DNA of 61,894 nucleotides, the filler included, from Dimorphilus gyrociliatus (lineage: Eukaryota; Animalia; Annelida), in NCBI GenBank assembly GCA_904063045.1. It is 5 parts of 5 records of this genome, joined end to end, with 100 filler letters (N's around TTAATTAATTAA, not from the genome) between each part and the next. Parts side by side here need not be neighbours in the genome. Positions count along the whole stretch, not along the records: positions 17,760 to 33,311 come from CAJFCJ010000232.1; 4 more parts are not named here. One strand, written 5' to 3'. Made by a program: the position numbers and the translations under genes. The notes below the pieces were generated by a model that saw only the letters and a list, made by a program, of their open reading frames with translations, was not told the DNA's origin and ran no database searches. Position 1 is the stretch's first letter, and every line of letters begins with the position of its first letter. Of this stretch, positions 17,760 through 33,311 are shown piece by piece.

Positions 17760-20700
17760 TTTATACTAAAATTCAACTGATTTCCAATCAAAATGCACAT
17801 TTTAATTTATTATTTCTTGACTAAACATCAAAAAAAGCAACAGCAATAGGTTATACCAAGGCAAATAAATGTGAACAAAAATATATGTCCAGTTAAATTT
17901 TTCTACAAATATTTATTGCCTTATTTTAATAGTTTTGGAACTGGTAATGAATTGGATCATTTTGAAATAACAACTTCCTCTAACAATGGCCATGTGAAAA
18001 TAAAAAGTACTATTGATCCTGATGGTGGAAGTCACCTTCTTTCTATACATTGCAGGTAGGGACAGAAGATGATATTTCTATTTGCTAAAATCTCATACAT
18101 ACAAAATGTACATTTTATTATAAAGGTTAAAGTGACTGATGGGTCATCTACACCAGCAGCACTCACTTCTACAGCCACCATTCAGATTTCAATATTGGAT
18201 ATAAATGATAATAATCCATCATTCTCTCCAGCTCCAGCACCATACAATGTATTAAAAATCCTATACAATTATTGCTTTGCAAATTTTCTAATCAAATATT
18301 CTAAATAGTTGCCAGAAAATACTCCAGCAGGAACAACAATAATAACCCTTGTGGCCACTGATGATGATTTAATAGTGAACTAACATTTTCAGAAGGAAGT
18401 ATGTTCATTTCTTATTTTATTGTAATTTGATTTGAAAATAAAAATTTGTATTTATTCTTTCAGCTGGTGATACAAATGATAACTTTGCCATTCAAAGTGA
18501 TGAAAGATTGTTCTCCTCAAACAAATTGACTATGATACAATGGGAGTTAGCAAAATAATTAACCTCCAAGCAATTGTTAGTGATGCTCAAATACAGCAAC
18601 TGCTACTGCTCAGATTACAGTTACTGATGTGTCTGATTTAACACCAAGCTGCAACCCAGCTGCTGTATCCGCAAACATCAGTGAGACAGCATCTGTCAAT
18701 GATGCAGTTGTTCAATTGCCTGCTCTGATGATGCAGTTTAACATATTCTATTGCTAGTGGAAATACAAACACAGCATTCAATTTGTAAGTAATGAAATTC
18801 AAGTAAATGATATTGGAGCTGGTTCTACAGGTAATTTTCAATTATATTCTCAAATATAAAAACAAGGCTAATCAATGGGAAAATTTTCAGCCTTAGACTA
18901 TGATGCTGGAGTGAAAGTGTACAATTGATTTGAGTTTCTGATGGAACAATACAATCAATGTACCAGTAACAATATCAATAAATCCAGTTGATGAAGGAGC
19001 ACCAACTTTCACTAATACAGCAGTGAATGTCAATGAAAATGAGTGTTGCTTTAGTGTTGCAACTTTTGCAGCATCTGATGTTGATGCAAGTCCACACAAT
19101 GTTCAAAAGTACTCAATTACCTCAGGTTTTGTTCAATTTTTTTATCTCATATATATTACTGATGTATATAAATAGTAATAAGTAACTGATATATCTATCA
19201 TGACTTTATTTTATTTAAAATTCTATTCCAACAGGAAATAGCGAAGGAAAGTTTGTATAAATCCATCTACTGTCTTTAAAAGACACTTTAGATTATGAGA
19301 CAACCACCACATATGCTTTGACTATACAAGCAGATGATGCACTGCAACTGGAAGTGTATCTTGACAGTCAATGTTCAAGATATAAATGATAACACTCCTA
19401 GCTGTCCAAAATCTTTATACATTCCTACTGCAGTAAATGAAAATGAAGCAAGTGACACTTTGGTTTTGAATTTAACAGAATAGTGATCCTGATACTTCAT
19501 CAAATTTGGATCAATACTATGTCTATAACTGGAGATAATGGTCGATTTGCTGTATCCAACATGTTAATTAAAACTACTTCAACACCACTTGATTATGAAA
19601 GTGCAACAACTTATACTTGATTATAACATTGACCGATAATGGAGGTGTCAGTCCATCAAATACTGAACTGTTACAGCTATAGTCAATGTAATTAGAAATA
19701 ATGCAATATTCTTTTGGAAATGTATTTATTTTTTCTAAATTTCTTTTAAGGTTGCCCCAATGAATGATAATACTCCTGCATGGAGCTCAACCCCTACTGG
19801 ATCAACTATTTCAGAGAGTACAACAATTGGAACAACATTTAACATTGGCTGCCACTGATGCTGATCAGGGTCCATTGGTGATAGCTCAATTACATATTCA
19901 ATTGTCAGTGCTGAGGATCAAGGTAAGATTAGTCATCTATGAGTTTTTTTTTTAATTTCATCTATTTAAATTTAACAGCTGCAGTATCAACAATGAATCT
20001 ATTCAAAGTTGGCCATCATCTGGACATCTACAACTTGTAGCCTCATTGGATAGAGATGCAGGGTAACAGAACACCGCTTGTTGTAAAAGCAGCAGATTCT
20101 GGTGCATCAGTCCTGAGTGTGACTGCATCCTTGACACTTACAATATCAGATTATAATGAATTCACACCAACATTTGATCATTTATTATACAATACAACAG
20201 TTGCAGAAAGTGCAGCTGTTGGAACAACTGTTTTGTCATTAACTGCTTCAGATTTGGATGCAACTTCTACTTTTGCTTTCAGGTAGAATATTTTGTTTAT
20301 CATTGTAAGAGTTTAAGGAATATATATTCACAACTATTTATTGTCTTAATGACAAAAGCCAGCTTTTTCCTTTTAAAAAAATGCTTATTAATCATTTTTG
20401 TAAATATTTCTCTATATTGCAGCTATTCAAATAGTTGTAAACTTTTTTATACCCTAAATAATAAGATTTCTCTCTATTTATATTGTAAAATTTGCATGTC
20501 TTTAAAGATTTCTTTTCACTCATCAATTAATGATGAAATGACAACAATTGTTTTTACATCCAAAAATAGAAAGAATATTTCACTGTTTTAAAGATTTTCA
20601 AGCAAAAACTTCTAATTTATCAAAGCTTATCTTACCCATAATAAGATAGTACAACCAAACCCAATTATACTGAACCAATAGCTGTGTATAAGAGAACAAA

Positions 20701-23700
20701 CATTCATAGTTGTTCACCTAAAGTGGGTGAAGTTTAGTGAAAAAGGAAGAATTGAGTTTCAGAAAGGATTCATTAAAATACGACAGGTTTACCTAAACAG
20801 ACTTAATGAATTTATACTAAAATTCAACTGATTTCCAATCAAAATGCACATTTTAATTTATTATTCTTGACTAACATCAAAAAAAGCAACAGCAATAGGT
20901 TATACCAAGGCAATAAATGTGAACAAAATATATGTCCATTAAATTTTTCTACAAATATTTATTTGCCTTATTTTAATAGTTTTGGAACTGGTAATGAATT
21001 GGTCATTTTGAAATAACAACTTCTCTAAAATGCCATGTGAAAATAAAAAGTACTATGATCCTGATGGTGGAAGTCACCTTCTTTCTATACATTGCAGGTA
21101 GGGGACAGAAGATGATATTTTCTATTGCTAAAATCTCATACATACAAAATGTACATTTTATTTATAAAGGTTAAAGTGACTGATGGGTCATCTACACCAG
21201 CAGCCTCACTTCTACAGCACCATTCAGATTTCAATATTGATATAATGATATAATCCATCATTCTCTCCAGCTCCAGCACCATACAATGTATTAAAATCCT
21301 ATTACAATTATTGCTTTGCAAATTTCTAATCAAATATTCTAAATAGTTGCCAGAAAATACTCCAGCAGGAACAACAATATAACCTTGTGGCCACTGATGA
21401 TGACTTTAATAGTGAACTAACATTTTCAGAAGGAAGTATGTCATTTCTTATTTTATTGTAATTTGATTGAAAATAAGAAATTGTATTTATTTTTTCAGCT
21501 GGTGATACAAATGATAACTTGCCATTCAAAGTGATGGAAAGATTGTTCTCTCAAACAATGACTATGATACAATGGGAGTTAGCAAAATAATTAACCTCCA
21601 AGCAATTGTTAGTGATGGCTCAAATACAGCAACTGCTACTGCTCAGATTACAGTTACTGATGTGTTGATTTAACACCAAGCTGCAACCCAGCTGCTGTAT
21701 CCGCAAACATCAGTGAGACAGCATCTGTCAATGATGCAGTTGTTCAATTGTCCTGCTCTGATGATGGCAGTTTAACATATTCTATTGCTAGTGGAAATAC
21801 AAACACAGCATTCAAGTTTGTAAGTAATGAAATTCAAGTAAATGATATTGGAGCTGGTTCTACAGGTAATTTTCAATTATATTCTCAAATATAAAAACAA
21901 GGCTAATCAATGGGAAATTTTCAGCCTTAGACTATGATGCTGGAGTGAAAGTGTACAATTTGATTGTTGATGTTTCTGATGGAACTAATACAATCAATGT
22001 ACCAGTAACAATATCAATAAATCCAGTTGATGAAGGAGCACCAACTTTCACTAATACAGCAGTGAATGTCAATGAAAATGAGGTGGTTGGCTTTAGTGTT
22101 GCAACTTTTGCAGCATCTGATGTTGATGCAAGTCCACACAATGTTCAAAAGTACTCAATTACCTCAGGTTTTTGTTCAATTTTTTTATCTCATATATATT
22201 ACTGATGTATATAAATAGTAATAAGTAACTGATATATCTATCATGACTTTATTTTATTTAAAATTCTATTCCAACAGGAATAGCGAAGGAAAGTTTGTTA
22301 TAAATCCATCTACTGGAGAAGTGTCTTTAAAAGACACTTTAGATTATGAGACAACCACACATATGCTTTGACTATACAAGCAGATGATGGCACTGCAACT
22401 GGAAGTGGTATCTTGACAGTCAATGTTCAAGATATAAATGATAACACTCCTAGCTGTCCAAAATCTTTATACATTCCTACTGCAGTAAATGAAAATGAAG
22501 CAAGTGACACTTTGGTTTTGAATTTAACAGAATGTAGTGATCCTGATACTTCATCAAATTTTGGATCAATTACTATGTCTATAACTGGAGATAATGGTCG
22601 ATTTGCTGTATCCAACATGTTAATTAAAACTACTTCAACACCACTTGATTATGAAAGTGCAACAACTTATACTTTGATTATAACATTGACCGATAATGGA
22701 GGTGTCAGTCCATCAAATACTGGAACTGTTACAGCTATAGTCAATGTAATTAGAAATAATGCAATATGTTCTTTTGGAAATGTATTTATTTTTTCTAAAT
22801 TTCTTTTAAGGTTGCCCCAATGAATGATAATACTCCTGCATGGAGCTCAACCCCTACTGGATCAACTATTTCAGAGAGTACAACAATTGGAACAACATTG
22901 TTAACATTGGCTGCCACTGATGCTGATCAGGGTCCATTGGTGATAGCTCAATTACATATTCAATTGTCAGTGCTGAGGATCAAGGTAAGATTAGTCATCT
23001 ATGAGTTTTTTTTTTTAATTTCATCTATTTAAATTTAACAGCTGCAGTATCAACAATGAATCTATTCAAAGTTGGCCATCATCTGGACATCTACAACTTG
23101 TAGCCTCATTGGATAGAGATGCAGGGGTAACAGAACACCGGCTTGTTGTAAAGCAGCAGATTCTGGTGCATCAGTCCTGAGTGTGACTGCATCCTTGACA
23201 CTTACAATATCAGATTATAATGAATTCACACCAACATTTGATCATTTATTATACAATACAACAGTTGCAGAAAGTGCAGCTGTTGGAACAACTGTTTTGT
23301 CATTAACTGCTTCAGATTTGGATGCAACTTCTACTTTTGCTTTCAGGTGAGAATATTTTGTTTATCATTTGTAAGAGTTTAAGGAATATATATTCACAAC
23401 TATTTATTGTCTTAATGACAAAAGCCAGCTTTTTCCTTTTAAAAAATGCTTATTAATCATTTTTGTAAATATTTCTCTATATTGCAGCTATTCAAATAGT
23501 TGTAAACTTTTTTTATACCCTAAATAATAAGATTTTCTCTCTATTTATATTGTAAATATTTGCATGTCTTTAAAGATTTCTTTTCACTTCATCAATTAAT
23601 GATGAAATGACAACAATTGTTTTTTACATCCAAAAATAGAAAGAATATTTCACTGTTTTAAAGATTTTCAAGCAAAAACTTCTAATTTATCAAAGCTTAT

Positions 23701-26700
23701 CTTACCCATAATAAGATAGTACAACCAAACCCAATTATACTGAACCAATAGCTGTTGTATAAGAGAACAAACATTCATAGTTGTTCACCTAAAGTGGGTG
23801 AAGTTTAGTGAAAAAGGAAGAATTGAGTTTCAGAAAGGATTCATTAAAATACGACAGGTTTACCCTAAACAGACTTAATTGAATTTTATACTAAAATTCA
23901 ACTGATTTCCAATCAAAATGCACATTTTAATTTATTATTTCTTGACTAAACATCAAAAAAAGCAACAGCAATAGGTTATACCAAGGCAAATAAATGTGAA
24001 CAAAAATATATGTCCAGTTAAATTTTTCTACAAATATTTATTTGCCTTATTTTAATAGTTTTGGAACTGGTAATGAATTGGATCATTTTGAAATAACAAC
24101 TTCCTCTAACAATGGCCATGTGAAAATAAAAAGTACTATTGATCCTGATGGTGGAAGTCCACCTTCTTTCTATACATTGCAGGTAGGGGACAGAAGATGA
24201 TATTTTCTATTTGCTAAAATCTCATACATACAAAATGTACATTTTATTATAAGGTTAAAGTGACTGATGGGTCATCTACACCAGCAGCACTCACTTCTAC
24301 AGCCACCATTCAGATTTCAATATTGGATATAAATGATAATAATCCATCATTCTCTCCAGCTCCAGCACCATACAATGTATTAAAAATCCTATTACAATTA
24401 TTGCTTTGCAAATTTTCTAATCAAATATTCTAAATAGTTGCCAGAAAATACTCCAGCAGGAACAACAATAATAACCCTTGTGGCCACTGATGATGACTTT
24501 AATAGTGAACTAACATTTTCAGAAGGAAGTATGTCATTTCTTATTTTATTGTAATTTGATTTGAAAATAAGAAATTTGTATTTATTCTTTTCAGCTGGTG
24601 ATACAAATGATAACTTTGCCATTCAAAGTGATGGAAAGATTGTTCTCCTCAAACAAATTGACTATGATACAATGGGAGTTAGCAAAATAATTAACCTCCA
24701 AGCAATTGTTAGTGATGGCTCAAATACAGCAACTGCTACTGCTCAGATTACAGTTACTGATGTGTCTGATTTAACACCAAGCTGCAACCAGCTGCTGTAT
24801 CCGCAAACATCAGTGAGACAGCATCTGTCAATGATGCAGTTGTTCAATTGTCCTGCTCTGATGATGGCAGTTTAACATATTCTATTGCTAGTGGAAATAC
24901 AAACACAGCATTCAAGTTTGTAAGTAATGAAATTCAAGTAAATGATATTGGAGCTGGTTCTACAGGTAATTTTCAATTATATTCTCAAATATAAAAACAA
25001 GGCTAATCAATGGGAAAATTTTCAGCCTTAGACTATGATGCTGGAGTGAAAGTGTACAATTTGATTGTTGATGTTCTGATGGAACTAATACAATCAATGT
25101 ACCAGTAACAATATCAATAAATCCAGTTGATGAAGGAGCACCAACTTTCACTAATACAGCAGTGAATGTCAATGAAAATGAGGTGGTTGGCTTTAGTGTT
25201 GCAACTTTTGCAGCATCTGATGTTGATGCAAGTCCACACAATGTTCAAAAGTACTCAATTACCTCAGGTTTTTGTTCAATTTTTTTTATCTCATATATAT
25301 TACTGATGTATATAAATAGTAATAAGTAACTGATATATCTATCATGACTTTATTTTATTTAAAATTCTATTCCAACAGGAAATAGCGAAGGAAAGTTTGT
25401 TATAAATCCATCTACTGGAGAAGTGTCTTTAAAAGACACTTTAGATTATGAGACAACCACCACATATGCTTTGACTATACAAGCAGATGATGGCACTGCA
25501 ACTGGAAGTGGTATCTTGACAGTCAATGTTCAAGATATAAATGATAACACTCCTAGCTGTCCAAAATCTTTATACATTCCTACTGCAGTAAATGAAATGA
25601 AGCAAGTGACACTTTGGTTTTGAATTTAACAGAATGTAGTGATCCTGATACTTCATCAAATTTTGGATCAATTACTATGTCTATAACTGGAGATAATGGT
25701 CGATTTGCTGTATCCAACATGTTAATTAAAACTACTTCAACACCACTTGATTATGAAAGTGCAACAACTTATACTTTGATTATAACATTGACCGATAATG
25801 GAGGTGTCAGTCCATCAAATACTGGAACTGTTACAGCTATAGTCAATGTAATTAGAAATAATGCAATATGTTCTTTTGGAAATGTATTTATTTTTTCTAA
25901 ATTTCTTTTAAGGTTGCCCCAATGAATGATAATACTCCTGCATGGAGCTCAACCCTACTGGATCAACTATTTCAGAGAGTACAACAATTGGAACAACATT
26001 GTTAACATTGGCTGCCACTGATGCTGATCAGGGGTCCATTGGTGATAGCTCAATTACATATTCAATTGTCAGTGCTGAGGATCAAGGTAAGATTAGTCAT
26101 CTATGAGTTTTTTTTTTAATTTCATCTATTTAAATTTAACAGCTGCAGTATCAACAATGAATCTATTCAAAGTTGGGCCATCATCTGGACATCTACAACT
26201 TGTAGCCTCATTGGATAGAGATGCAGGGGTAACAGAACACCGGCTTGTTGTAAAAGCAGCAGATTCTGGTGCATCAGTCCTGAGTGTGACTGCATCCTTG
26301 ACACTTACAATATCAGATTATAATGAATTCACACCAACATTTGATCATTTATTATACAATACAACAGTTGCAGAAAGTGCAGCTGTTGGAACAACTGTTT
26401 TGTCATTAACTGCTTCAGATTTGGATGCAACTTCTACTTTTGCTTTCAGGTGAGAATATTTTGTTTATCATTTGTAAGAGTTTAAGGAATATATATTTCA
26501 CAACTATTTATTGTCTTAATGACAAAAGCCAGCTTTTCCTTTTAAAAAAATGCTTATTAATCATTTTTTGTAAATATTTCTCTATATTGCAGCTATTCAA
26601 ATAGTTGTAAACTTTTTTTATACCCTAAATAATAAGATTTTCTCTCTATTTATATTGTAATATTTGCATGTCTTTAAAGATTTTCTTTTCACTTCATCAT

Positions 26701-29700
26701 TAATGATGAAATGACAAATTGTTTTTTACATCCAAAATAGAAAGAATATTTCACTGTTTTAAAGATTTTCAAGCAAAAACTTCTAATTTATCAAAGCTTA
26801 TCTTACCATAATAAGATAGTACAACCAAACCAATTATACTGAACCAATAGCTGTTGTATAAGAGAACAACATTCATAGTTGTTCACTAAAGTGGGTGAAG
26901 TTTAGTGAAAAAGGAAGAATGAGTTTCAGAAAGGATTCATTAAATACGACAGGTTTACCTAAACAGACTTAATTGAATTTATACTAAAATTCAACTGATT
27001 TCCAATCAAAATGCACATTTTAATTTATTATTTCTTGACTAAACATCAAAAAAAGCAACAGCATAGGTTATACCAAGGCAAATAAATGTGAACAAAATAT
27101 ATTCCAGTTAATTTTTCTACAAATATTTATTTGCCTTATTTAATAGTTTTGGAACTGGTATGGAATTGGATCATTTTGAAATAACAACTTCTCTAACAAT
27201 GCCATGTGAAATAAAAATACTATTGATCCTGATGGTGGAAGTCCACCTTCTTTCTATACATTGCAGTAGGGGGACAGAAGATGATATTTCTATTTGCTAA
27301 AATCTCATACATACAAATGTACATTTTTATTTATAAGGTTAAAGTGACTGATGGTCATCTACACCAGCAGCACTCACTTCTACAGCCACATTCAGATTTC
27401 AATATTGGATATAAATGATAATAATCCATCATTCTCTCCAGCTCCAGCACCATACAATGTATTAAAATCCTATTACAATTATTGCTTTGCAAATTTTCTA
27501 ATCAATATTCTAAATAGTTGCCAGAAAATACTCCAGCAGAACAACAATAATAACCTGTGGCACTGATGATGACTTTAATAGTGAACTAACATTTTCAGAA
27601 GGAAGTATGTCATTTCTTATTTTATTGTAATTTGATTTGAAAATAAGAAATTTGTATTTATTCTTTTCAGCTGGTGATACAATATAACTTTGCCATTCAA
27701 AGTGATGGAAAGATTGTTCTCCTCAACAAATTGACTATGATACAATGGGAGTTAGCAAAATAATTAACCTCCAAGCAATTGTTAGTGATGGCTCAAATAC
27801 AGCAACTGCTACTGCTCAGATTACAGTTACTGATGTGTCTGATTTAACACCCAAGCTGCAACCCAGCTGCTGTATCCGCAAACATCAGTGAGACAGCATC
27901 TGTCAATGATGCAGTTGTCAATTGTCCTGCTCTGATGATGGCAGTTTAACATATTCTATTGCTAGTGGAAATACAAACACAGCATTCAAGTTTGTAAGTA
28001 ATGAAATTCAAGTAAATGATATTGGAGCTGGTTCTCAGGTAATTTTCATATTATTCTCAAATTAAAAACAAGGCTAATCAATGGGAAAATTTCAGCCTTA
28101 GACTATGATGCTGGAGTGAAAGTGTACAATTTGATTGTTGATGTTTCTGATGGACTAATACAATCAATGTACCAGTAACAATATCAATAAATCCAGTTGA
28201 TGAAGGAGCACCAACTTTCACTAATACAGCAGTGAATGTCAATGAAAATGAGGTGGTTGGCTTTAGTGTTGCAACTTTTGCCAGCATCTGATGTTGATGC
28301 AAGTCCACACAATGTTCAAAAGTACTCAATACCTCAGGTTTTTGTTCAATTTTTTTTTATCTCATATATATTACTGATGTATATAAATAGTAATAAGTAA
28401 CTGATATATCTATATGACTTTATTTTATTTAAAATTCTATTCCAACAGGAAATAGCGAAGGAAAGTTTGTTATAAATCCATCTACTGGAGAAGTGTCTTT
28501 AAAAGACACTTTAGATTTATGAGACAACCACCACATATGCTTGACTATACAAGCAGATGATGGCACTGGCAACTGGAAGTGGTATCTTGACAGTCATGTT
28601 CAAGATATAATGATAACACTCCTAGCTGTCCAAAATCTTTATACATTCCTACTGCAGTAAATGAAAATGAAGCAAGTGACCTTTGGTTTTGAATTTAACA
28701 GAATGTAGTGATCCTGATACTTCATCAATTTTGGATCAATTACTATGTCTATAACTGGAGATAATGGTCGATTTGCTGTATCCAACATGTTAATTAAAAC
28801 TACTTCAACACCACTTGATTATGAAAGTGCAACAACTTATACTTTGATTATAACATTGACCGATATGGAGGTGTCAGTCCATCAAATACTGGAACTGTTA
28901 CAGCTATAGTCAATGTAATTAGAATAATGCAATATGTTCTTTGGAAATGTATTTATTTTTTTCTAAATTTCTTTTAAGTTGCCCCAATGAATGATAATAC
29001 TCCTGCATGGAGCTCAACCCTACTGGATCAACTATTTCAGAGAGTACAACAATTGGAACAACATTGTTAACATTGGCTGCCACTGATGCTGATCAGGTCA
29101 TTGGTGATAGCTCAATTACATATTCAATTGTCAGTGCTGAGGATCAAGGTAAGATTAGTCATCTATGAGTTTTTTTTTTTAATTTCATCTATTTAAATTT
29201 AACAGCTGCAGTATCAACAATGAATCTATTCAAAGTTGGCCATCATCTGGACATCTACAACTTGTAGCCTCATTGGATAGAGATGCAGGGGTAACAGAAC
29301 ACCGGCTTGTTGTAAAAGCAGCAGATTCTGGTGCATCAGTCTGAGTGTGACTGCATCCTTGACACTTACAATATCAGATTATAATGAATTCACACCAACA
29401 TTTGATCATTATTATACAATACAACAGTTGCAGAAAGTGCAGCTGTTGGAACAACTGTTTTGTCATTAACTGCTTCAGATTTGGATGCAACTTCTACTTT
29501 TGCTTTCAGGTGAGAATATTTTGTTTATCATTTGTAAGAGTTTAAGGAATATATATTTCACAACTATTTATTGTCTTAATGACAAAAGCCAGCTTTTCCT
29601 TTTAAAAAATGCTTATTAATCATTTTTTGTAAATATTTCTCTATATTGCAGCTATTCAAATAGTTGTAACTTTTTTTATACCCTAAATAATAAGATTTTC

Positions 29701-32700
29701 TCTCTATTTATATTGTAATATTTGCATGTCTTTAAAGATTTTCTTTTCACTTCATCAATTAATGATGAAATGACAACAATTGTTTTTTACATCCAAAATA
29801 GAAGAATATTTCACTGTTTTAAAGATTTTCAAGCAAACTTCTAATTTATCAAGCTTACTTACCATAATAAGATAGTCAACCAACCCAATTATACTGAACC
29901 AATAGCTGTGTATAAGAGAAAACATCATAGTTGTTCACCTAAAGTGGGTGAAGTTTAGTGAAAAGGAAGAATTGAGTTTCAGAAAGATTCATTAAAATAC
30001 GACAGGTTACCCTAAACAGACTTAATTGAATTTTATACTAAAATTCAACTGATTTCCAATCAAAATGCACATTTTAATTTATTATTTCTTGACTAAACAT
30101 CAAAAAAAAGCAACAGCAATAGGTTATACCAAGGCAAATAAATGTGAAAAAAATATATGTCCAGTTAAATTTTTCTACAAATATTTATTTGCTTATTTTA
30201 ATAGTTTTGGAACTGGTAATGAATTGGATCATTTTGAAATAACAACTTCCTCTAACAATGGCCATGTGAAAATAAAAAGTACTATTGATCCTGATGGTGG
30301 AAGTCACCTTCTTCTATACATTGCAGGTAGGGGGACGAGATGATATTTTCTATTGCTAAAATCTCATACATACAAAATGTACATTTTTATTTATAAAGGT
30401 TAAAGGACTGATGGGTATCTACACCAGCAGCACTCACTTCTACAGCCACCATTCAGATTCAATATTGGATATAAATGATAATAATCCATCATTCTCTCCA
30501 GCTCCAGCACCATACAATGTATTAAAATCCTATTACAATTATTGCTTTGCAAATTTTCTAATCAAATATTCTAAATAGTTGCCAGAAAATACTCCAGCAG
30601 GAACAACAATAATAACCCTTGTGGCCACTGATGATGACTTTAATAGTGAACTAACATTTCAGAAGGAAGTATGTCATTTCTTATTTTATTGTAATTTGAT
30701 TTGAAAATAAGAAATTTGTATTTATTCTTTTCAGCTGGTGATACAAATGATAACTTTGCCATTCAAAGTGATGGAAAGATTGTTCTCCTCAAACAAATTG
30801 ACTATGATACAATGGGAGTTAGCAAAATAATTAACCTCCAAGCATTGTTAGTGATGGCTCAAATACAGCAATGCTACTGCTCAGATTACAGTTACTGATG
30901 TGTCTGATTTAACACCAAGCTGCAACCCAGCTGCTGTATCCGAAACATCAGTGAGACAGCATCTGTCAATGATGCAGTTGTTCAATTGTCCTGCTCTGAT
31001 GATGGCAGTTTAACATATTCTATTGCTAGTGGAAATACAAACACAGCATTCAAGTTTGTAAGTAATGAAATTCAAGTAAATGATATTGGAGCTGGTTCTA
31101 CAGGTAATTTTCAATTATATTCTCAAATATAAAAACAAGGCTAATCAATGGGAAAATTTTCAGCCTTAGACTATGATGCTGGAGTGAAAGTGTACAATTT
31201 GATTGTTGATGTTTCTGATGGAACTAATACAATCAATGTACAGTAACAATATCAATAAATCCAGTTGATGAAGGAGCACCAACTTTCACTAATACAGCAG
31301 TGAATGTCAATGAAAATGAGGTGGTTGGCTTTAGTGTTGCAACTTTTGCAGCATCTGATGTTGATGCAAGTCACACAATGTTCAAAAGTACTCAATTACC
31401 TCAGGTTTTTGTTCAATTTTTTTTATCTCATATATATTACTGATGTATATAAATAGTAATAAGTAACTGATATATCTATCATGACTTTATTTTATTTAAA
31501 ATTCTATTCCAACAGGAAATAGCGAAGGAAAGTTTGTTATAAACTCTACTGGAGAAGTGTCTTTAAAAGACACTTTAGATTATGAGACAAACCACATATG
31601 CTTTGACTATACAAGCAGATGATGGCATGCAACTGGAAGTGGTATCTTGACAGTCAATGTTCAAGATATAAATGATAAACTCCTAGCTGTCCAAAATCTT
31701 TATACATTCCTACTGCAGTAAATGAAAATGAAGCAAGTGACACTTTGGTTTTGAATTTAACAGAATGTAGTGATCCTGATACTTCATCAAATTTTGGATC
31801 AATTACTATGTCTATAACTGGAGATAATGGTCGATTTGCTGTATCCAACATGTTAATTAAAACTACTTCAACACCACTTGATTATGAAAGTGCAACAACT
31901 TATACTTTGATTATAACATTGACCGATAATGGAGGTGTCAGTCCATCAAATACTGGAACTGTTACAGCTATAGTCAATGTAATTAGAAATAATGCAATAT
32001 GTTCTTTTGGAAATGTATTTATTTTTTTCTAAATTTCTTTTAAGGTTGCCCAATGAATGATAATACTCCTGCATGGAGCTCAACCCTACTGGATCAACTA
32101 TTTCAGAGAGTACAACAATTGGAACAACATTGTTAACATTGGCTGCCATGATGCTGATCAGGGGTCCATTGGTGATAGCTCAATTACATATTCAATTGTC
32201 AGTGCTGAGGATCAAGGTAAGATTAGTCATCTATGAGTTTTTTTTTTTAATTTCATCTATTTAAATTTAACAGCTGCAGTATCAACAATGAATCTATTCA
32301 AAGTTGGGCCATCATCTGGACATCTACAACTTGTAGCCTCATTGGATAGAGATGCAGGGGTAACAGAACACCGGCTTGTTGTAAAGCAGCAGATTCTGGT
32401 GCATCAGTCCTGAGTGTGACTGCATCCTTGACACTTACAATATCAGATTATAATGAATTCACACCAACATTTGATCATTTATTATACAATACAGTTGCAG
32501 AAAGTGCAGCTGTTGGAACAACTGTTTTGTCATTAACTGCTTCAGATTTGGATGCAACTTCTACTTTTGCTTTCAGGTGAGAATATTTTGTTTATCATTT
32601 GTAAGAGTTTAAGGAATATATATTTCACAACTATTTATTGTCTTAATGACAAAAGCCAGCTTTTTCCTTTTAAAAAAATGCTTATTAATCATTTTTTGTA

Positions 32701-33311
32701 AATATTTCTCTATATTGCAGCTATTCAAATAGTTGTAAACTTTTTTTATACCTAAATAATAAGATTTTCTCTCTATTTATATTGTAAATATTTGCATGTC
32801 TTTAAAGATTTTCTTTTACTTCATCAATTAATGATGAAATGACAACAATTGTTTTTTACATCCAAAATAGAAAGAATATTTCACTGTTTTAAAGATTTTC
32901 AAGCAAAAACTTCTAATTTATCAAAGCTTATCTTACCCATAATAAGATAGTACAACCAAACCCAATTATACTGAACCAATAGCTGTTGTATAAGAGAACA
33001 AACATTCATAGTTGTTCACCTAAAGTGGGTGAAGTTTAGTGAAAAAGGAAGAATTGAGTTTCAGAAAGGATTCATTAAAATACGACAGGTTTACCCTAAA
33101 CAGACTTAATTGAATTTTATACTAAAATTCAACTGATTTCCAATCAAAATGCACATTTTAATTTATTATTTCTTGACTAACATCAAAAAAAGCAACAGCA
33201 ATAGGTTATACCAAGGCAAATAAATGTGAACAAAATATATGTCCAGTTAAATTTTTTACAAATATTTATTTGCCTTATTTTAATAGTTTTGGAACTGGTA
33301 ATGAATTGGAT
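17760..33311 (+). repeat. Tandem array of ~3.08-kb units (5 full copies plus a partial sixth)
   Basis: The marker ttatactaaaattcaactg recurs at ~17761, 20812, 23886, 26979, 30033 and 33117. The differences I could see between copies are almost all 1-few-nt indels. Confidence 0.97.
17933..33311 (+). CDS. Multi-exon cadherin-repeat (Fat/Dachsous-like) protein, six EC domains per tandem unit; partial at both ends
   Basis: Spliced consensus has the linkers DINDNNP, DVSDLTP, PVDEGAP, DINDNTP, PMNDNTP and DYNEFTP, plus LDYE/LDRD motifs. GT-AG introns. The last exon of a unit (...TTCAG|gtgag, 23346) joins the first exon of the next (aatag|TTTTGGA, 24059) in frame: FAF-S-FGTGN. Confidence 0.88.

Follow-up and report, generated by a model that had tools for sequence, protein, structure and literature searches.

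A tandem array of near-identical six-domain cadherin cassettes in the annelid Dimorphilus gyrociliatus, probably the interior of one large gene

The DNA analysed here (the window, a stretch of 61,894 nucleotides (nt), filler included) joins five parts of the genome assembly GCA_904063045.1 of the annelid Dimorphilus gyrociliatus, and this report concerns the part at positions 17760-33311, which comes from record CAJFCJ010000232.1. This piece of 15,552 nt (32% GC) is filled from end to end by 5.06 head-to-tail copies of a ~3.1-kb unit, and the spliced consensus of that unit comprises six extracellular cadherin (EC) domains. We interpret the contig as the inner stretch of a tandem array of six-EC cassettes lying inside one large cadherin gene, a reading to which we assign a probability of roughly 70%. 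Judging from the sequence, six old and diverged ECs appear to have been amplified recently as one block.

Array layout

Families of direct repeats spaced 3035-3105 nt apart run throughout the piece, and no unique flank was found on either side of the array within it. Tandem Repeats Finder reports nothing in this region because its longest period is 500, which leaves it blind to a 3.1-kb unit. Cutting the array at positions 17760, 20821, 23885, 26978, 30032 and 33116 gives five full units, which were aligned with MAFFT, followed by the first 196 nt of a sixth. In the list below, singleton differences are those private to one unit.

17760..20820, + strand: unit 1, 3061 nt; error-rich copy at the contig start, departing from the majority by 66 singleton differences (repeat families and unit alignment)
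20821..23884, + strand: unit 2, 3064 nt (repeat families and unit alignment)
23885..26977, + strand: unit 3, 3093 nt; cleanest of the five, showing 11 singleton differences; exons 1, 2, 3 and 8 at consensus length
26978..30031, + strand: unit 4, 3054 nt; the most error-rich copy, with 1-nt deletions at two splice sites
30032..33115, + strand: unit 5, 3084 nt (repeat families and unit alignment)
33116..33311, + strand: start of unit 6; the contig stops 25 nt into its exon 1

Gene model and encoded domains

The gene model was built on the majority consensus of the five units, which is 3115 nt long. For every one of the AT-rich spacers that separate its coding stretches, a GT...AG pair was found that joins the reading frames without a stop. 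The resulting unit has 8 exons, 7 short introns (73, 61, 66, 60, 111, 66 and 57 nt, in order) and one inter-unit intron of 716 nt, all with canonical GT-AG borders. Its exons sum to 1905 nt, or 635 codons free of stops; from base composition, the chance of such an open frame at 32% GC is estimated at ~1e-22.

The inter-unit intron is in phase 2 at both ends, and the units follow one another in frame. With an equal intron phase at its two ends and a coding length divisible by three, the unit has the properties by which an intragenic exon-intron repeat is recognised. At the junction 23346/24059, which leads from the end of unit 2 exon 8 to the start of unit 3 exon 1, the donor reads CAG/GTGAGA and the acceptor TTTTAATAG/ (the slash marks the splice point), again in phase 2. 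Splice sites are canonical in the five units, save for the two sites of unit 4 that carry 1-nt deletions. No Rfam family was found in the piece, the long inter-unit intron included.

The exons are given below for unit 3, where exons 1, 2, 3 and 8 have the consensus length as written and the other four are each 1 nt short; the six ECs are called ECa to ECf.

24059..24182, + strand: exon 1, 124 nt; middle of ECa, starting with the third base of the codon split by the inter-unit intron
24254..24376, + strand: exon 2, 123 nt; end of ECa with its DINDNNPSF linker, and start of ECb
24438..24528, + strand: exon 3, 91 nt; N-terminal part of ECb
24595..24965, + strand: exon 4, 371 nt (1 nt under consensus); remainder of ECb and most of ECc
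25026..25267, + strand: exon 5, 242 nt (1 nt under consensus); end of ECc and start of ECd
25379..25847, + strand: exon 6, 469 nt (1 nt under consensus); remainder of ECd and nearly all of ECe
25913..26086, + strand: exon 7, 174 nt (1 nt under consensus); ECe linker and N-terminal half of ECf
26143..26449, + strand: exon 8, 307 nt; remainder of ECf and first third of ECa, ending with two bases of the split codon
23347..24058, + strand: inter-unit intron separating units 2 and 3; consensus length 716 nt, phase 2, GTGAGA...AATAG
20283-20979, 26450-27146, 29510-30204 and 32577-33286, + strand: equivalent inter-unit introns, from the consensus gene model

Introns 3, 5 and 7 (phase 1) and intron 8 (phase 2) lie at roughly the same position in four different ECs, just past a 'YSI.SG'-like strand. 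This shared position has the appearance of an old site at which introns recur, and would favour duplications that keep both the frame and the domain register.

Database searches were run exon by exon, the joined reading being used for the frame check and for the alignment of ECs within the unit. The Pfam family Cadherin (PF00028) matches four exon pieces with 48.4, 42.2, 40.4 and 37.9 bits (gathering cut-off 28.8; E from 1e-10 to 1e-12), and four further pieces more weakly. Exon 6 gives E=1.3e-12 in unit 2 (22350-22820); in unit 3 its two halves, each free of stops, give E=1e-10 and E=2.5e-9. The longest stop-free piece, at 22362-22745 in the same exon of unit 2 (128 amino acids, aa), matches CELSR1 in the PDB with an E of 6e-31, as well as protocadherins, Dachsous (protocadherin-16), Fat4, Pcdh15 and Cdh23, with E from 6e-31 up to 1e-12; 104 PDB cadherin chains are found at E<=1e-3. 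On this homology the consensus unit encodes EC domains of the cadherin superfamily.

Once spliced, the consensus unit yields six EC domains of 100-114 aa which share 24-37% identity with one another. ECa is split by the inter-unit intron: exon 8 ends with its first third, and exons 1 and 2 of the following unit supply the remainder. The joined domain shows 27-36% identity to the other five ECs, within the range found among ECs generally in the unit, and the unit junction therefore rebuilds a whole domain. The alignment of the ECs displays acidic xEx, DxD and LDYE/LDRD-type motifs in all six. ECa and ECd keep the canonical linker motif (DINDNxP) and ECe has one close to it (MNDNTP); ECb (DVSDLTP), ECc (PVDEGAP) and ECf (DYNEFTP) carry altered forms of the DxNDNxP linker. 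Calcium binding is putative.

The original prediction, made from this sequence, had proposed head-to-tail exon-intron cassettes of ~3 kb, each with six ECs, joined in frame through a phase-2 junction. All of this was confirmed by the 3035-3105-nt repeat spacing and the alignment of five units, by six domains of 100-114 aa with PF00028 matches above the gathering score, and by a junction whose coordinates (23346/24059) were exact in a unit of 1905 coding nucleotides, a multiple of three.

It could still be that a fragment of a cadherin gene was amplified in satellite fashion outside any expressed gene, and that the array is dead. The contig contains no gene ends, and copies as young as these would look intact even if unselected, so that the open consensus is no proof of function. 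The unit is, however, exactly in frame with matching intron phases, for which the chance is ~1 in 3, and both of its ends fall at the same position of an EC so that a whole domain is rebuilt. The same design also occurs inside complete predicted cadherins that possess a signal peptide and a membrane anchor (see the last section). With these points taken together, we consider a dead amplification quite unlikely and retain an array within a cadherin gene as the better reading.

Differences between the copies

Pairwise comparison of the five full units in the MAFFT alignment gives 0.3-1.9% substitutions and 46-91 gap openings. Nearly all differences between copies are deletions of 1-2 nt, and the singleton differences amount to 156 deletions, 16 insertions and 58 substitutions. 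Deletions become more frequent as homopolymers lengthen, from ~0.9% per base at single bases to ~5% in runs of at least five. Exons and introns are both affected: each copy has 12.6 deletions per kb of exon and 19.0 per kb of intron, a gap plausibly explained by the introns being richer in homopolymers. Substitutions track deletions from unit to unit: unit 3 combines 10 deletions with 0 substitutions, and unit 4 combines 46 with 29.

Each of the inspected differences shared by two units is an indel in a homopolymer or short run, or an alignment shift beside one. The pairs that share most often fall among units 1, 2 and 4, the three richest in private differences, which fits independent errors at error-prone sites. 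Among the candidates inspected in the five-unit alignment, no reliable variant marks a subset of units.

Three small deletions that lie within 20 nt are common to units 2 and 4, at ~21020-21045 and ~27190-27215 respectively (consensus ~215-235, in exon 1), and units 1, 3 and 5 are without them. We read these as recurrent error in an error-prone context; a real variant alternating along the array is less likely.

In the cleanest pair, units 3 and 5, true divergence is capped at 0.3% or less. The five units are thus identical within sequencing error, introns included, and the pattern of their differences is that of an unpolished long-read contig. It is not that of decay, because decay would be dominated by substitutions. 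Two further claims of the original prediction find support here. The first attributed the indels to long-read errors and not to decay, in agreement with the deletion bias, the homopolymer dependence, the substitutions that track deletions and the sharing among error-rich units. The second, a very recent or homogenised intragenic amplification, accords with units that are uniform down to their introns.

Two technical explanations bear on these observations. The number of units could be a product of the assembly, the assembler having looped through a repeat with fewer or many more copies, or the contig being a single noisy unplaced read. A contig composed entirely of repeat, with nothing unique at its borders, would suit this explanation, as would the ~2% of residual long-read-type error, which indicates that the sequence was not polished and probably had few supporting reads. 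Long reads, though, seldom invent head-to-tail copies, the error pattern varies by unit as expected of five separately sequenced stretches, and other animals with chromosome-scale assemblies have arrays of as many as 12 units. We therefore regard an assembly product as unlikely.

Alternatively, the contig could be a concatemer read from a 3.1-kb circular DNA, produced by rolling-circle copying during library preparation and not by a chromosomal array. Units indistinguishable beyond sequencing error are what a single template would give, but ordinary genome libraries have no such copying step, and the easiest source of a circle with exactly one in-frame cassette would itself be a tandem array already in place. 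We hold this origin to be very improbable, and a chromosomal array of cassettes remains the preferred interpretation.

Relatives in public data

The 22362-22745 piece was also compared with 1.84 billion representative proteins. This gave 6050 matches at E<=1e-3, the best of them with 29-37% identity; a word-index search with a 157-aa stop-free piece found no match within its length window of 86-275 aa. No match exceeds 37% identity, and the organism's own protein is thus missing from the collection. The named matches are predicted proteins of Nematostella, Branchiostoma and Haliotis labelled 'protocadherin Fat 4-like' or 'cadherin-23-like', together with a bacterial cadherin-like protein, and further named relatives come from Babylonia, Ylistrum, Corticium and Glandiceps. 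The best single-domain scores are low (50-59 bits) and evenly spread over amphioxus, mollusc and other matches. The 'Fat 4-like' names do not assign the array to a subfamily, because EC identity is 29-37% to every match whatever its name. The parts that characterise the Fat and Dachsous subfamilies (EGF and laminin-G modules in Fat, and conserved cytoplasmic regions) are absent from the contig.

Among metagenome contigs, nothing close was found, either by an exact 33-mer identical in the five units or by a protein-guided scan. Two metagenome loci, L001:1382-1642 and L002:5001-5147, hold distant cadherin-like relatives with 34-42% identity over 50-87 residues.

Origin of the array and its implications

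We propose that both ends of the duplication fell in introns of equal phase (2), at matching positions in two ECs that lie six domains apart. Splicing from exon 8 to exon 1 of the next unit would then rebuild a whole EC and keep the frame, precisely because the breakpoints sit in a phase-2 intron at the same EC position. That the copies are identical down to their introns points to a very recent expansion or to ongoing homogenisation. Unequal crossing-over or gene conversion between units could both expand the array and keep its units uniform, and would also destabilise the copy number. Copy number, and perhaps the skipping of cassettes, may in this way vary the length of the ectodomain; the predicted isoforms of a Nematostella protein, described below, hint at the same. 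An EC measures ~4.5 nm along a calcium-stiffened rod. Each unit would contribute ~27 nm of rod, and five units, with at least 30 ECs, roughly 135 nm.

Several points weigh against this interpretation. As written, every copy carries frameshifts, and it takes the majority consensus to give an open frame. Between identical copies there is no dN/dS (non-synonymous to synonymous substitution) signal and hence no evidence of selection on the array. The closest protein relative has at most 37% identity. In a short, unpolished contig that consists of nothing but repeat, the unit count may be wrong. The contig holds no flank, start, stop, signal peptide, membrane anchor or tail, so that we infer the single expressed gene in which we place the array, as we do the homogenising mechanism and the variability in length.

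If the array does lie in an expressed gene, it would offer a clean case of protein length evolving via unequal crossing-over of whole exon-intron cassettes. A step of six domains (~27 nm) would be gained or lost at once, intron phase and position ensuring that a domain is rebuilt at each junction. The array is also a warning for annotators: genes of this kind end up in pieces, on contigs that lack flanks and are full of errors, and gene prediction misses them.

Comparison with known systems

The EC type, the many ECs in a row and the best PDB sequence matches are common to the window array and to Fat, Dachsous, CELSR, Cdh23 and Pcdh15. In those cadherins, unlike here, the ECs are all mutually diverged. 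The original prediction implied that near-identical cadherin cassettes are rare, and this did not hold. An internal-period scan of 160 fetched cadherin-like proteins found 50 with a strong period, in which many exact 8-mers come back at a single offset, a proportion to be read with the knowledge that the ranking of relatives favours repeat-bearing proteins, since repeated good matches add up.

One complete example is Nematostella vectensis XP_048581438.1 (P0155), a protein of 4407 aa with 12 tandem units of 303 aa and 3 ECs each. Its units are 89-100% identical (the central ones 100%), and the ECs within a unit are 17-37% alike. The array is flanked by a signal peptide on one side and by a membrane anchor and cytoplasmic tail on the other. 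RefSeq predicts isoforms of 4407, 4104 and 3801 aa, in steps of exactly one unit; the isoforms of this gene are named 'cadherin-23 isoform X1' or 'protocadherin Fat 4'. A second Nematostella gene, LOC116612238 (XP_048580320.1; P0153), has ~7 units of 437 aa that are 88-98% identical. Both proteins resemble the Dimorphilus array in their ectodomain of tandem, near-identical multi-EC units with diverged ECs inside each unit, and differ from it in having 3 or 4 ECs per unit where the window unit has 6. With ~32-33% identity to the window ECs they are not orthologues. They are complete predicted genes with signal peptide, anchor and tail, whereas here there is the array alone, and the likeness is one at the protein level.

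Multi-EC units of ~90-100% identity also occur inside long cadherins of the sponge Corticium candelabrum (XP_062507613.1, 2 copies of 835 aa), the mollusc Ylistrum balloti (XP_060065380.1, 505 aa; XP_060076862.1, 374 aa), the hemichordate Glandiceps talaboti (XP_077996449.1, 501 aa) and the mollusc Babylonia areolata (XP_076448228.1, 224 aa). They differ from the window array in unit size and in their fewer copies (~2 to 4 or 5). These proteins are computer-predicted, and their arrays may have assembly problems too. Near-identical multi-EC cassette cadherins occur in at least five animal phyla. The window array, whose tandem multi-EC units are identical within sequencing error and built of diverged ECs, joins a kind, recognised by units at least ~90% identical, that is already present in public protein sets; a literature search for near-identical multi-EC cassettes in cadherins found no paper describing them.

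Within the fetched set, the cassette proteins are P0155, P0002, P0153, P0001, P0032, P0100, P0042, P0136 and P0021, with units of 224-835 aa. Another group (P0003, P0031, P0029, P0071, P0074, P0019, P0145 and P0006) consists of near-identical repeats of one or two cadherin-like domains, with periods of 94-105 and 200 aa; P0074 reaches 98-100% identity over ~25 windows. These are unnamed proteins, mostly from ENA assemblies, along with a Tistrella mobilis protein, and they resemble giant adhesins of bacteria in which cadherin-like repeats have been homogenised.

Taken with the Nematostella, sponge, mollusc and hemichordate examples, the Dimorphilus array suggests that cassettes are recurrently homogenised in lineage-specific giant cadherins. 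More tentatively, and as a possibility that we hold to be less than even, it could be one instance of a widespread and apparently undescribed class of animal cadherins in which ectodomain length is set by a homogenised cassette array of unstable copy number. Differences between alleles and between splice forms would in that case come in whole cassettes and would tune how far an adhesion or tip-link-like filament can reach. Such a class, if true, would have examples from sponges and cnidarians to molluscs and hemichordates.

Outside cadherins, the closest mechanistic analogues are found in different protein families. Vertebrates have intragenic exon-intron repeats of varying copy number in human LPA, as the kringle IV-2 array, and in nebulin, as a triplicated exon block. 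In both, near-identical multi-kb units lie head to tail and in frame and add whole domains, unequal crossing-over alters their number, and copy-number polymorphism is documented.

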